Below the pieces are notes generated by a model. The model saw only the letters and a list, made by a program, of their open reading frames with translations. It was not told the DNA's origin and made no database searches. Position numbers and translations under genes: made by a program. Shown in pieces: positions 42,517-45,586 of a DNA stretch of 64,000 nt. The DNA lies in the sequence record NC_031107.2. The stretch is one strand, 5' to 3'. Positions within the stretch are counted from its first letter, which is position 1. Each line of letters opens with the position of its first letter.

Positions 42517-42981
42517 ATGGAAATCTTACGTAAAATGAATTTTGATGCAAAAGAGAATGCAGGCTCTGAGACCTACTGGGTGGTGAGAGTGGCTGACCTC
42601 GATCAGTTCAATCGTAATGGTGTGAAGTACGTGGGTAAACCGCGCCAGCTGCTGCGTGACTTCTTCCGTCGCCCGCACACCTTCTGCGAATACCAGGAAC
42701 CCAACCTGGCTGTTTACAATCGCCTGACACCGAAAGGGTCGGACGACTACATTGCACGGGCGTGCAGTGTACCCACCGCAAATATCTGTGGCGCGTTGTC
42801 TAATCCGCGTGTCGCAGCCGATGGCCGTTCCATTACGCTGGAACTGCGTCCATGGGGCCCTCATGCAGCCCGTCTGCGTGAGTTACTGAACGATGATATT
42901 ACCCCGGTGTTTGCAATGCGTGCATTGTCTGACCCGGACGGTAACATCGATAAAGTCATTACCTGGGATTTAGTGGGTTAA
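42517..42981 (+). CDS. Truncated, probably inactive paralog of the phiKZ/T4-type prohead protease, 154 aa
   Basis: FNRNGVKY, EYQEP (replacing GExxHP), ELRPWGPHAARL, PVFAMRAL (replacing FSxR), VITWDLV. Confidence 0.55.
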   Translation: MEILRKMNFDAKENAGSETYWVVRVADLDQFNRNGVKYVGKPRQLLRDFFRRPHTFCEYQEPNLAVYNRLTPKGSDDYIARACSVPTANICGALSNPRVAADGRSITLELRPWGPHAARLRELLNDDITPVFAMRALSDPDGNIDKVITWDLVG

Positions 42982-43068
42982 TGATGTAGTGCCCGGAGGT
43001 TCGCCTCCGGTTGTAGTTAGTTGTACCCTAAGTAGTTTGATTATAACAATTCCAATAAGGAGAAATTT

Positions 43069-43245
43069 ATGGAAAATATGTACGTGTTTATAATGGCAGT
43101 ATTCGGGTTCTGTGCAGGTTTCACTATCGCAAACTTTGTAAGGTTTCGAAAGAAAGGTGAGCATACTGCAGCAGCAGGTCAACTGTTAATGGCAATTGTT
43201 TTTCTGATTGTTGTTATTTGGTCGGCATGTCAACGTTGGATGTAA
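43069..43245 (+). CDS. Small 2-TM membrane protein, 58 aa (below ORF-track cutoff)
   Basis: TAAGGAG SD; MENMYVFIMAVFGFCAGFTIANFVRFRKKGEHTAAAGQLLMAIVFLIVVIWSACQRWM; stop 1 nt before the next ATG. Confidence 0.7.
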   Translation: MENMYVFIMAVFGFCAGFTIANFVRFRKKGEHTAAAGQLLMAIVFLIVVIWSACQRWM

Positions 43246-43246
43246 C

Positions 43247-43534
43247 ATGAAACGTGTAATCCTGGTAGTTATAGGTGTCCTGGCGGCACCTATTTTTGCA
43301 CATGGCGCGAAAGTGCCAGAGCAGAAAATCGAAGTCGACCAACAAGCATACGAGCGTGTGTTCCTCGGCTGCTTAAACAATTTCAAGAATGTTGATACCA
43401 AAGATGAAGATGTCGCAACCGACATCATTCGTGCGTGTGATGACTCTGCGCAACGTATCGCCATTCGTAAAGGTACTTACCGGGCAAATGACTGGTCAAT
43501 CGTCACGCCGCTTAACAGCGAGGAAACTAAATGA
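43247..43534 (+). CDS. Secreted protein with signal peptide, 95 aa
   Basis: MKRVILVVIGVLAAPIFAHG-A leader; two Cys in the mature part. Confidence 0.65.
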   Translation: MKRVILVVIGVLAAPIFAHGAKVPEQKIEVDQQAYERVFLGCLNNFKNVDTKDEDVATDIIRACDDSAQRIAIRKGTYRANDWSIVTPLNSEETK

Positions 43535-44646
43535 CACGCGTTGTAACATTAACCGGTGGCGTTGATTCGTCCTGGAATCTGATGAACATGATTAACCGTG
43601 TAGACAGCCAGTACGAGACCATTCGTCCGCTCTACATGGATTTCAAACAAGGCCAAGATGCGTCTTTCGCTGAGTTTGTATTAGGCACAGAGATTGCCCA
43701 TCGGTTATTGAAGCAAAGCCAGGGATACCAATCCCCGCTACAGTGGATTTCTCCGCCGGATAACTTCTTCCCGGATGTCCGTGTTACTCAGCATCATCAA
43801 CTGGGCGCGCGCTTATCCCAGCAAGGTTACACTATTTTGGGTATTTCGTGGGTGATGAATAAAGTCTTGTCACAATCACCGGGTTCTACTGCAACGGTGG
43901 GTTGGAACATGGCCGACACCGTTGAAGCATCCGGCGCACAAGCCGAGTGGTCGACCGAAGACTACGCTCGCCTGAAACGGATGTACAGTGACCTTATCTA
44001 TTTCCAAGACCATGGTTATCGTGCGGCACCGCTACTGACGCCAGCTTGGGATATGGATAAATTTGAAATGTGGTCAGCGCTGCCTTCTAATGTGAAAGAG
44101 CTTATTACGGTCGCGTCGCACTATCAGATTAATATCCGACACATTCCCGGCGAGGAATACTTCTATATTGTCGCTGACAAAGAGCGTTGTGGTAAGGCGC
44201 TACGTTACCGTCGACGTGGTATTAGACTGACTCGGGCTTGGCGGATTAAACTTGATGATGAATTCTATCGTCGCGTATACACAGGTAATTTCCCTGCTGA
44301 TAATCTGGGCGGTGGGCCGCGTAAGTTCCTGAAAGAGCTGAAAACAAAGCGTGACCCTTTCAGTGAATTGGTGATTGGGTGTGATAACGCTTCACTTGAC
44401 ATCCGTTGTTATAACGATGAAGAGTGGCCAAACATAGAGCACGCCCTGGAACTGCGCTGGAGAGCTTACAATGGTCAAGAAAGTGAAGATCTGGACGCTC
44501 CAACTAGCGAAGTGGCGAGTAGCCGAAGCGAAGGGGATTCCGGTAATCAACACAACAGTGAAGTCCGGTCTGAAGCATCTGGCACCGACGTGGGACTTCC
44601 TGAGCGTGTATCAGAAGTCCGACAAGGGTCCGCTGGCGCAAGCTGA
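43531..44646 (+). CDS. QueC-like PP-loop ATPase lacking the zinc site, 371 aa
   Basis: VVTLTGGVDSS, QYETIRPLYMDFKQGQ, TVGWNMAD and LLTPAWDMDKFEMW are collinear with QueC motifs. Confidence 0.6.
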   Translation: MTRVVTLTGGVDSSWNLMNMINRVDSQYETIRPLYMDFKQGQDASFAEFVLGTEIAHRLLKQSQGYQSPLQWISPPDNFFPDVRVTQHHQLGARLSQQGYTILGISWVMNKVLSQSPGSTATVGWNMADTVEASGAQAEWSTEDYARLKRMYSDLIYFQDHGYRAAPLLTPAWDMDKFEMWSALPSNVKELITVASHYQINIRHIPGEEYFYIVADKERCGKALRYRRRGIRLTRAWRIKLDDEFYRRVYTGNFPADNLGGGPRKFLKELKTKRDPFSELVIGCDNASLDIRCYNDEEWPNIEHALELRWRAYNGQESEDLDAPTSEVASSRSEGDSGNQHNSEVRSEASGTDVGLPERVSEVRQGSAGAS

Positions 44647-44854
44647 GTACACCCGGCTTTACAATCTAAAGTTAGACCGGTTGCTAGATGAAGATGCGGA
44701 GAAGCTCGTTGAGATTCTTCGGATGGGGGAGGTGGCATTGATGTGCTATTGTCCCGCTGGCCAATTCTGCCACCGGTATTTATTAGTCGAGAAACTGCGT
44801 GAAGTAGCCGAATGGTTCGGTTATGAATTCGAGTACGCAGGAGAGTTAACCTAA
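44471..44854 (+). CDS. DUF488/YeaO-like protein, 127 aa
   Basis: LAPTWDFL..Y and VALMCYCPAGQFCHRYLLVEKL (C..CHR signature). Confidence 0.7.
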   Translation: MVKKVKIWTLQLAKWRVAEAKGIPVINTTVKSGLKHLAPTWDFLSVYQKSDKGPLAQAEYTRLYNLKLDRLLDEDAEKLVEILRMGEVALMCYCPAGQFCHRYLLVEKLREVAEWFGYEFEYAGELT

Positions 44855-44857
44855 AGG

Positions 44858-45307
44858 ATGATGAATATGAAATTAGTAATGCCTTCTAGCAATGTCAATA
44901 TCCACACTCACGATTACAACACTATCGTTAACGTGAACGCCCTGCGTAACCTGGTGCAGTCTGCGGCCACCCGCCTTAAAGCAGAAATCGTGGAAATCGA
45001 TTACGATGTCTTCGTACAGTTTTCCTTTGTCGGTGAAGCTTACCGCATTGCGTTATACCACGCATTGTACGCAGATGAGATTAACGGCGTGAAGAATTAC
45101 CTTGAACGCTGTGTGGAAGTGTTCCAGGGACAACGGGAAGAGATGGCCTTCGTGGACGGTGAGTTCCCGGATTATGTCCGTGCTGGTTTCGACCGTCTGC
45201 TGGCAGCCGCTAACAAGAAGTTACAAGAGAACGGAACCTCAGGCGCGTTCGACGGCAGCCACGTTTCCCTGTACGACAATAAAAACCTTAACCCTATTCT
45301 GCACTAA
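44858..45307 (+). CDS. Hypothetical protein, about 149 aa
   Basis: cctAAAGGA SD. Confidence 0.65.
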   Translation: MMNMKLVMPSSNVNIHTHDYNTIVNVNALRNLVQSAATRLKAEIVEIDYDVFVQFSFVGEAYRIALYHALYADEINGVKNYLERCVEVFQGQREEMAFVDGEFPDYVRAGFDRLLAAANKKLQENGTSGAFDGSHVSLYDNKNLNPILH

Positions 45308-45316
45308 GAGCGTGTA

Positions 45317-45535
45317 ATGAAATTCTTCTTTGTAGTGGTTGTCATTTTCTGCATCGGTGCCGTCCTGCGTTCCTTTCTTCGTTACCTCAGACACAGACAA
45401 CGTGCACACTTAGCGCAACAGCTGAATGCTTATCGTCAGGTTTCTGAGTATGTCGATCGCGCCGGGCGTGAGAAATGGATGATGGTCATCTGCTTCTTAA
45501 TCGGCCTGTGGTGTACCATTAAACTCTTCAATTAA
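45317..45535 (+). CDS. Small membrane protein, 72 aa
   Basis: Hydrophobic N- and C-terminal segments around a basic loop. Confidence 0.6.
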   Translation: MKFFFVVVVIFCIGAVLRSFLRYLRHRQRAHLAQQLNAYRQVSEYVDRAGREKWMMVICFLIGLWCTIKLFN

Positions 45536-45544
45536 AAGTAGCGT

Positions 45545-45586
45545 AGCTACCACACGATCTTATGTGTGGTAGCTCTATTTTTTTTT
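45545..45586 (+). terminator. Terminator with embedded TATG late-promoter motif
   Basis: AGCTACCACAC-gatcttat-GTGTGGTAGCT followed by a T tract; TATG at 45561-45564. Confidence 0.65.

Follow-up and report, generated by a model that had tools for sequence, protein, structure and literature searches.

Two overlapping genes, gp135 (ASESINO_135) and gp136 (ASESINO_136), lie on the forward strand of a 64,000-nucleotide stretch of sequence record NC_031107.2 (the window, in whose coordinates positions are given unless another record or locus is named), and both are listed as "hypothetical protein" in GenBank. An earlier note, made from the letters of this DNA, had described gp135 as an orphan QueC-like enzyme without a zinc site, fused in overlap with a DUF488 gene that served as its partner. 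By its sequence and predicted structure, we find that gp135 is a divergent, zinc-less member of the PP-loop ATP pyrophosphatase superfamily, with an SGGxDS-type loop and a superposing Rossmann-like fold, and that QueC/Cap9 is the nearest fold to its model in PDB, AFDB and ESM Atlas.

The source is Erwinia phage vB_EamM_Asesino (KX397364.2 / NC_031107.2; 246,290 bp), an Erskinevirus and nucleus-forming jumbo phage of the Chimalliviridae. Window positions 43000-45400 are 100% identical to it, and record coordinates are window coordinates plus 62,000. The features of gp135 are as follows.

43531..44646, forward strand: gp135 (ASESINO_135), 371 residues, predicted divergent zinc-less PP-loop ATP pyrophosphatase of QueC/Cap9 fold (open reading frame, GenBank coding sequence, phrog_8825, AlphaFold2 model, Cap9 as top match).
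43531..44223, forward strand: predicted catalytic Rossmann/PP-loop domain, residues 1-231 (VIA-align model range 1-231 against Cap9 11-191; column counts).
43552..43569, forward strand: PP-loop TGGVDS, residues 8-13 (alignment A3; aligned to Cap9 SGGMDS).
44224..44490, forward strand: C-terminal extension, residues 232-320, predicted helices and short strands (secondary structure and model confidence).

Both gp135 and gp136 are genuine coding genes because gp135 has homologues and its core differs from its counterpart in phage Stratton in the manner of coding sequence, and because a natural variant carries the two with no insertion or deletion. In the core of gp135 the codon differences between Asesino and Stratton comprise 139 synonymous and 46 non-synonymous changes. 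The variant, about 0.5% different, comes from a public run of 2024 labelled RNA (X1) and spans window positions 43294-45043, with both genes on one contig. Seven sites differ inside the two genes, six of them in gp135, and all are third codon positions as computed from the coordinates. These data are assembler contigs and hence evidence of presence and sequence, not of transcription. Parts of the Asesino stretch are also present in phyllosphere and wastewater metagenomes.

Fold and conserved residues of gp135

Searched alone, gp135 matched nothing in Pfam (E <= 1), NCBIfam (E <= 10), PADLOC or, with phmmer, the sequences of PDB. It belongs to phrog_8825 (7e-155), a family of unassigned function, and is no orphan: homologues occur in 59 phage records. 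The family is nonetheless small, because its profile, run exhaustively against 1.84 billion representative proteins, gave only 27 clusters at 50% identity. All members that could be placed belong to nucleus-forming jumbo phages; of the more distant relatives we looked up three, and these come from short metagenomic contigs that could not be placed. No published description of the family was found in literature searches. For the comparisons below we used a family alignment (A3) of 28 sequences that are 15-45% identical to gp135.

The family profile found Cap9, the QueC-family ligase of type IV CBASS (9nto_B), as its best match in PDB (E 2.5e-5), followed more weakly by TilS, nitrile synthetase, LarE and QueC. 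Two blocks align: the stretch from the PP-loop to a Glu, which reads SGGMDS...FGQ(x)5E in Cap9 and TGGVDS...FKQ(x)7E in gp135, and the P(x)5K motif, which reads APLLDWHK and TPAWDMDK, respectively. An AlphaFold2 model built on the alignment had a mean predicted local distance difference test (pLDDT) score of 87.6 and a predicted template modeling score of 0.88. Foldseek again ranked Cap9 first in PDB (E 4.4e-5; template modeling (TM) score of 0.68 by target), and VIA-align superposed 177 of 181 residues with a Z of 13.6 and a root mean square deviation of 2.9 A over model residues 1-231. The runners-up were ThiI (Z 11.8), NcsA/TtuA (about 10) and LarE (about 9), the Rossmann-like fold as a whole superposing on Cap9, ThiI, TtuA, LarE, NAD synthetase and TilS with Z values of 8-13.6. 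Among AFDB clusters the second match is annotated as 7-cyano-7-deazaguanine synthase, and 9 of the 10 rows listed by ESM Atlas are QueC-family clusters, the first two of them viral, with TM scores up to 0.82 by hit. Since the profile and all fold searches (Foldseek, VIA-align, AFDB and ESM Atlas) agree, the earlier designation as QueC-like holds for the fold and for the order of the motifs. The PP-loop is intact. Both reading frames lie where the note had placed them with all its quoted motifs present, and the aligned Cap9 blocks and the superposition with Cap9 show that the likeness is not due to chance.

Models of single families recognize these proteins poorly. The curated threshold for QueC is not reached by gp135, which matches neither PF06508 nor TIGR00364. 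Among the 28 family members, 8 have weak matches to the Pfam QueC model (best 2e-4) and 6 match the PP-loop model ATP_bind_3; TIGR00364 is matched at 6e-5 at best, and the best NCBIfam match is the TilS N-domain (7e-6). The sole PADLOC model touched by the relatives is the one named QueC, weakly and by 4 of the 28.

The family consensus of the PP-loop is [ST]-[GAS]-G-[LVI]-[DE]-S, in which [ST], G10, [DE] and S13 are each present in 28/28 sequences, and the family profile aligns it to the loops of Cap9, TilS, LarE and QueC. Besides TGGVDS at residues 8-13, gp135 contains QY....Y.DF.Q at 27-40 (Q27, Y35 and Q40), TVGWNMAD at 122-129, TPAWDMDKFEMW at 170-181 and ERCGKALRYRRRG at 218-230. Invariant residues are G10, S13, Q97, G124, P171, K177 (28/28) and K222 (28/28); D129 (27/28), W125 and W173 (26/28 each) and E48 (25/28) are nearly so, and Q98, E132, Y226 and G230 are also conserved.

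Canonical QueC proteins are characterized by SGGxDS, YxQxHxxE, VPxRN, YPDC, a conserved Lys and the zinc motif C(x)8CxxCxxC, and Y35, R99 and Y131 are essential in the E. coli enzyme (PMC13329287). Cap9 retains all of these features in reduced form, and in QatC the substrate motifs are replaced and the zinc motif is kept (PMC13329287). What survives in the gp135 family is the PP-loop, the Glu (E48), the Lys of P(x)5K and, in part, F/Y-x-Q. The family lacks YPDC, RN and the zinc motif, of which only C220 is left in Asesino. No alignment column has Cys in more than 7 of the 28 sequences; there is no conserved Cys and therefore no zinc site, so the loss that had been noticed in gp135 holds for its whole family. 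The Gln-Gln pair Q97-Q98 appears to stand at the expected position of RN, as judged from motif order and not from superposition.

Probable chemistry of gp135

The loss of these motifs bears directly on preQ0 (7-cyano-7-deazaguanine) synthesis. The search for its pathway covered the whole 246-kb Asesino genome (the window and five further loci) by tblastn with phage 9g proteins, and found no homologue of FolE, QueD, QueE, Gat-QueC or DpdA (best E 0.075); the lack of folE, queD, queE and dpdA reported for the window thus extends to the genome. Two adjacent radical-SAM proteins outside the window, gp180 (445 residues) and gp181 (300 residues; record 140957-143195), were considered as QueE and rejected, as they have a generic radical-SAM domain only and no QueE-level similarity by tblastn. 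A canonical QueC making preQ0 for the modification of phage DNA or tRNA would be in keeping with the QueC-like fold and with the presence in Asesino of all four queuosine-type tRNAs (Tyr, Asp, His and Asn), and gp135 shares with canonical QueC (PF06508 cluster 1) the fold, the PP-loop, the conserved Glu and the conserved Lys. It does not, however, group with canonical QueC: it reaches no threshold of that family, it has lost the zinc site, YPDC and VPxRN, features essential in E. coli QueC, and it lacks the queD/queE/folE context, with no DpdA/TGT encoded in the genome either. When the gp135 family was compared with phage 9g Gat-QueC by hhalign, the PP-loop block alone could be aligned. Because the zinc motif, YPDC and RN are missing and the genome has no pathway genes, gp135 is not a preQ0 synthase; canonical preQ0 synthesis is excluded for practical purposes, and this explanation, to which we would give next to no weight, is effectively refuted. 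In addition, because no Cys is conserved, sulfur-transfer chemistry of the kind performed by ThiI, MnmA, LarE and TtuA, as well as Fe-S chemistry, is unlikely for gp135.

We consider it probable that gp135 is an active PP-loop enzyme that adenylates a carboxylate or carbonyl group and passes it to a nitrogen nucleophile, in a pocket rebuilt from Q97/Q98, W125, E132, W173, K222 and Y226, and that the minimal QueC/Cap9 scaffold is its ancestor or else its nearest structural relative. The fold, the retention and loss of motifs, purifying selection and the phyletic distribution are direct observations, and the enzyme class suggests the reaction and the type of nucleophile. By analogy with that class, ATP would be bound with its beta and gamma phosphates held by the PP-loop ([ST]GGxDS), D129 and K177; the carboxylate or carbonyl oxygen of the substrate would then be adenylated with release of pyrophosphate; and a nitrogen nucleophile would displace AMP to give an amide or amidine. 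Q97-Q98, W125, E132, W173, K222 and Y226 would take the place of the zinc subdomain and of the motifs, YPDC and RN, that contact deazaguanine in QueC and Cap9. Because these elements are replaced, the substrate pair of gp135 probably differs from theirs or is bound differently.

Several observations weigh against this assignment. No member of the family reaches the curated threshold of any family, and the matches obtained from sequence are scattered over ArgG-related, LarE, QueC and TilS models and mostly rest on the PP-loop. Identity between gp135 and Cap9 is only 14-16%. The first residue of the PP-loop is Thr, not Ser, in Asesino and in 15 of the 28 members. Both the mapping of QQ to RN and the absence of YPDC depend on alignment and motif order, not on a superposed active site, and literature searches found no biochemical, expression or proteomic data for the family.

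Among the alternatives, an RNA-modifying PP-loop enzyme, TilS-like or an amidating analogue of ThiI or MnmA that adenylates a base of phage or host tRNA and adds an amine, is fairly unlikely. The PP-loop domain of ThiI is the second-best structural match and aligns as far as model residue 283, the TilS N-domain leads the NCBIfam matches, Asesino has 13 tRNA genes including one for a CAT-anticodon tRNA, and gp135 has an Arg-rich helix at residues 217-240. That Arg-rich stretch is not conserved in the family, however, where only K222 and G230 are kept within it; searches gave no RNA-binding domain, whether THUMP, TilS C-terminal or another, and there is no conserved Cys for thiolation. More generally, gp135 shares the PP-loop domain (Z 8-12) and weak hidden Markov model matches with ThiI, TtuA/NcsA, LarE, TilS, argininosuccinate synthase and the NAD and GMP synthetases, but their catalytic Cys or Fe-S ligands and their accessory domains (THUMP, TilS C-terminal and GATase) are absent from it. 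A pseudoenzyme that has kept the fold and lost ATP turnover, serving as a structural protein, scaffold or decoy, would account for the loss of the zinc subdomain and QueC substrate motifs, for the Thr that half of the family has instead of the first PP-loop Ser, and for the location of gp135 near head and tail morphogenesis genes. We nevertheless regard it as improbable, as the residues predicted to bind ATP, pyrophosphate and Mg (G10, S13, D129 and K177) are precisely those that stay invariant across sequences of 15-45% identity, a pattern typical of active enzymes.

Unlikely, too, is a protein ligase of the Cap9/QatC type, which would adenylate host 7-carboxy-7-deazaguanine (CDG), or a similar planar acid, and join it to a protein amine. 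Such a ligase might act on a protein of the phage or on an immune protein of the host (for example the CD-NTase of type IV CBASS, or QatB), for counter-defence or to drain the CDG pool. Profile, Foldseek and VIA-align all single out Cap9 as the best match among solved structures; ligation of CDG to protein N-termini has been demonstrated for both Cap9 and QatC (PMC13329287; bioRxiv 10.1101/2025.04.06.647259); the host can supply CDG through its queuosine biosynthesis, so that the phage needs no pathway; and a nucleobase could stack on the conserved Trp and Tyr residues. In Klebsiella phage Miami, moreover, a gene for a Tad2-like Thoeris anti-defence domain (gp100, L006 3339-3611; PF11195, 4.5e-14) lies two genes upstream of the gp135 homologue. 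On the other hand, the Cap9 residues that contact deazaguanine, Y115, D117 and R86 (bioRxiv 10.1101/2025.04.06.647259), and the zinc motif have no conserved counterpart; gp135 reaches no Cap9/QatC-type PADLOC model, the generic QueC model being touched by only those 4 relatives; no neighbouring protein has the Met-Gly N-terminus used by CdnD and QatB; and gp135 sits among morphogenesis genes, outside any known anti-defence cluster.

The known ligases differ from gp135 in other respects as well. Cap9 shares its minimal Rossmann/PP-loop fold and, in the same order, the SGGxDS-type loop, F-x-Q...E and P(x)5K blocks, but the Cap9 motifs CE(x)6CxxCxxC (zinc), H(x)4YxDC and RN (PMC13329287) are missing from gp135, whose conserved part exceeds Cap9 in length by about 140 residues. 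The CD-NTase, Cap10 (TGT-like) and Cap11 of type IV CBASS are not found beside gp135, where the genes encode DUF488, small secreted or membrane proteins and proteins of no assigned function. QatC is, like gp135, an enlarged QueC-fold protein in which the canonical substrate motifs are replaced and the PP-loop is kept, but it retains a variant of the zinc motif and has motifs of its own, D(x)4R(x)7WxR, HP and P(x)4TK (PMC13329287), not seen in gp135. There is no QatA (ATPase), QatB or QatD (TatD nuclease) nearby. The earlier note had imagined an enzyme that mimics, jams or reverses QueC-type immune chemistry; for this possible link, fold similarity is the one observation that has a bearing. Improbable, in our view, is the broader proposal that the family consists of protein-nucleobase or protein-small-acid ligases, viral counterparts of Cap9/QatC deazaguanylation that would cap a protein of phage or host with host CDG or another planar acid, for counter-defence against QueC-type immunity or as a new modification of virion or nuclear proteins, with DUF488 as a co-translated Cys-His-Arg enzyme acting on the same adduct in the SPN3US/Erwinia lineage.

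The gp136 gene and its relation to gp135

The extra residues that had been noticed in gp135, about 100 by the first estimate, are real, but they do not form a single region. Relative to Cap9 and QueC there are insertions at residues ~62-95, modelled with low pLDDT, and at ~196-216, a beta-hairpin where the zinc knuckle would be, followed by the C-terminal extension (232-320) and a disordered tail (321-371), with pLDDT below 50 from about residue 318. In residues 232-320 no domain known outside the family was identified, and the clearly best fold matches in PDB and AFDB end near residue 231; the alignments with ThiI/TtuA and with six ESM Atlas QueC clusters extend into this part, to residues ~283-301. 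The tail runs into gp136, the features of which are as follows.

44459..44462, forward strand: putative ribosome-binding site GGAG, 8 nt upstream of the ATG at 44471 (sequence).
44471..44854, forward strand: gp136 (ASESINO_136), DUF488-N3a, 127 residues (Pfam PF22751 8e-10, homologue alignment A4, AlphaFold2 model).
44471..44646, forward strand: gp135/gp136 overlap, 176 nt, covering the gp135 tail from about residue 314, with DUF488 in the +1 frame (codon differences, pLDDT).
44744..44776, forward strand: DUF488 signature C92-Y-C94 ... C100-H-R102, invariant in 9 homologues (alignment A4).

The overlap measures 176 nt because DUF488 starts at the ATG at 44471 and not at 44558. The GenBank start, a GTG at 44558, drops 29 conserved residues that form the confidently modelled strand 1 and helix 1, and the ATG fits better. 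Within the overlap, Asesino and Stratton differ by 3 synonymous and 12 non-synonymous changes in the frame of gp135 and by 8 synonymous and 4 non-synonymous changes in that of DUF488. The one motif that seems conserved in the tail, DAPxxEVAxS, results when the conserved DUF488 N-terminus, KIWTLQLAKWR, is read in the other frame. Because the stop codon of gp135 lies inside the DUF488 gene and the tail is unconstrained in its own frame, the last ~55 residues of gp135 are, on the codon evidence, unconstrained read-through, and the apparent fusion of the earlier note is an overprinting artefact.

The overlap and the +1 relation were seen in all five genomes examined (Asesino, phiEaH2, Stratton, SPN3US and Machina). 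Taken by itself, that constant frame would be expected if the two were one gene, split by a programmed +1 frameshift or by a sequencing error, that encodes a PP-loop-DUF488 fusion. We give this explanation practically no credence: independent genomes and the run X1 variant share the frames with no indel; DUF488 has its own ATG and GGAG; the length of the overlap is not constant, being 176 nt in Asesino and Stratton and, according to which start codon is taken, ~56-107 nt in SPN3US and Machina; there is no fused protein among the 27 family representatives and no member of the alignment matches DUF488; and the gp135 tail is unconstrained. The arrangement instead suggests, from the layout of the two frames, translational coupling of DUF488 to gp135.

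The gp136 protein itself matches PF22751 (DUF488-N3a) at 8e-10 with 39.5 bits against a cut-off of 27. It is a plain member of that family, its sole oddity being the overlap of the gp135 tail with its first 59 codons. The C..CHR site described in the earlier note is indeed conserved, and A13 and R16 are likewise invariant in alignment A4. The AlphaFold2 model (pLDDT 94.8; strand at residues 3-11) has no convincing solved relative, with Foldseek E values of 0.03 or above and a best VIA-align Z of 6.2, to the C-terminal domain of RapZ; faint matches to dual-specificity-phosphatase folds (Z <4) are a lead, not a result. Weak PADLOC matches to the candidate defence proteins PDC-M19A and PDC-M45C mean that the DUF488 domain is also present in candidate defence loci, and nothing more. 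No functional paper on DUF488 was found in literature searches. Identity of gp136 is 66% to SPN3US gp120 and 39% to phiKZ gp151; between Asesino and SPN3US, the 66% of DUF488 compares with 31% for gp135.

Whether DUF488 is a partner of gp135 can be judged from the genomes that carry either gene. In the enterobacterial lineages with both (Erskinevirus, Seoulvirus SPN3US gp119-gp120, Machinavirus and relatives) the two are always adjacent. Because the whole gp134-gp137 block is syntenic in these lineages (SPN3US gp118 and gp121 are homologous to Asesino gp134 and gp137, respectively), this adjacency has little independent weight. No DUF488 gene was found beside the PP-loop homologues of Pseudomonas phage EL (gp200), Klebsiella phage Miami (gp102) or three metagenomic contigs (L011-L013), and the small genes that follow the distant homologues were tested as hidden DUF488 and rejected. 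Conversely, DUF488-N3a occurs in 300 phage records, far more widely than the gp135 family, and in phiKZ (gp151), Goslar, RAY and CR5 it is preceded by unrelated genes with no PP-loop; as hidden PP-loop homologues these genes were likewise rejected (hhalign probability <1%, no SGGxDS, mutually dissimilar). Three of the upstream genes, in CR5 (L020 1495-2535), RAY (L021 1117-2301) and phiKZ (L008 2485-3924), encode proteins of 346-479 residues, a different one in each lineage. The position just before DUF488 thus appears to be a variable slot in chimallivirus genomes. If PP-loop protein and DUF488 formed an obligate two-gene system, they should occur together and side by side throughout the PP-loop family, and this is not observed. 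The earlier note had named unconserved DUF488 linkage as a refutation of its own reading, and this largely applies to the enzyme-plus-partner system, as adjacency is limited to the SPN3US, Erskinevirus and Machinavirus lineages. DUF488 is a widely conserved chimallivirus gene that adjoins gp135 by happenstance in the SPN3US and Erwinia lineages, and not a fixed partner.

Genomic setting and significance

Both genes lie in a compact operon, bracketed by hairpins, with tail genes downstream. Its remaining features are as follows.

42993..43010, forward strand: GC-rich hairpin after gp132, probably marking the upstream limit of the transcription unit (sequence).
43069-45535, forward strand: gp133-gp138 block, predicted compact operon (bracketing hairpins).
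43247..43534, forward strand: gp134, small signal-peptide protein homologous to SPN3US gp118; its stop overlaps the gp135 start (ATGA).
44858..45307, forward strand: gp137, no assigned function, same operon, homologous to SPN3US gp121.
45545..45584, forward strand: strong intrinsic-terminator-like hairpin (45545-45574), 12-bp stem and T7, which ends the gp133-gp138 block (sequence).

The outer genes of the block, gp133 (43069-43245) and gp138 (45317-45535), encode tiny membrane proteins of ~60-70 residues with two hydrophobic helices. Terminator-like sites number 16 in the region, with 6.1 expected. Upstream of the block, gp132 (42517-42981; 154 residues) is a Peptidase_S80/prohead-protease-like paralogue (Pfam 1.8e-6; phrog_7478 3e-49); a full-length head maturation protease, gp267, is encoded at record 225479-226282, and gp132 may be a shortened copy that serves another purpose.

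Elsewhere in the genome, the 13-tRNA cluster (L014 612-4665, outside the window) contains Tyr-GTA, Asp-GTC, His-GTG and Asn-GTT, which are the queuosine-type set, together with the CAT-anticodon tRNA and an odd 'tRNA-Ile(aat)' of 121 nt. Record positions 176706-177206 (L018 1707-2207), also outside the window, encode gp217, a protein with a Macro domain ('Appr-1-p processing'; Pfam Macro 1.3e-3); a recent report describes a DarG2-like antitoxin of a chimallivirus (PMC13309987). In phiEaH2 the annotation of the gp135 homologue, gp042, begins at an internal Met and thereby omits the PP-loop, and the open reading frame extends to an ATG at L002 3518 (L002 3518-3569). This start and that of gp136 are two database annotations corrected here.

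The gp135 family forms a branch of the QueC/PP-loop superfamily that has so far gone uncatalogued. Hits to PF06508, a model that gp135 fails to reach, underlie the map published for the QueC superfamily. The family has neither zinc site nor conserved Cys, its placed members all come from jumbo phages, and it is invisible to sequence models and recognizable only through structure. Protein deazaguanylation by QueC-fold enzymes, Cap9 and QatC, was discovered only in 2025-2026. SPN3US gp119 and EL gp200 come from genetically workable phages and are therefore tractable targets. If gp135 is active, it would widen the known chemistry of the QueC scaffold. Should it prove to act on deazaguanine or on immune proteins of the host, it would be the first known case of a virus using an enzyme of that pathway on proteins.

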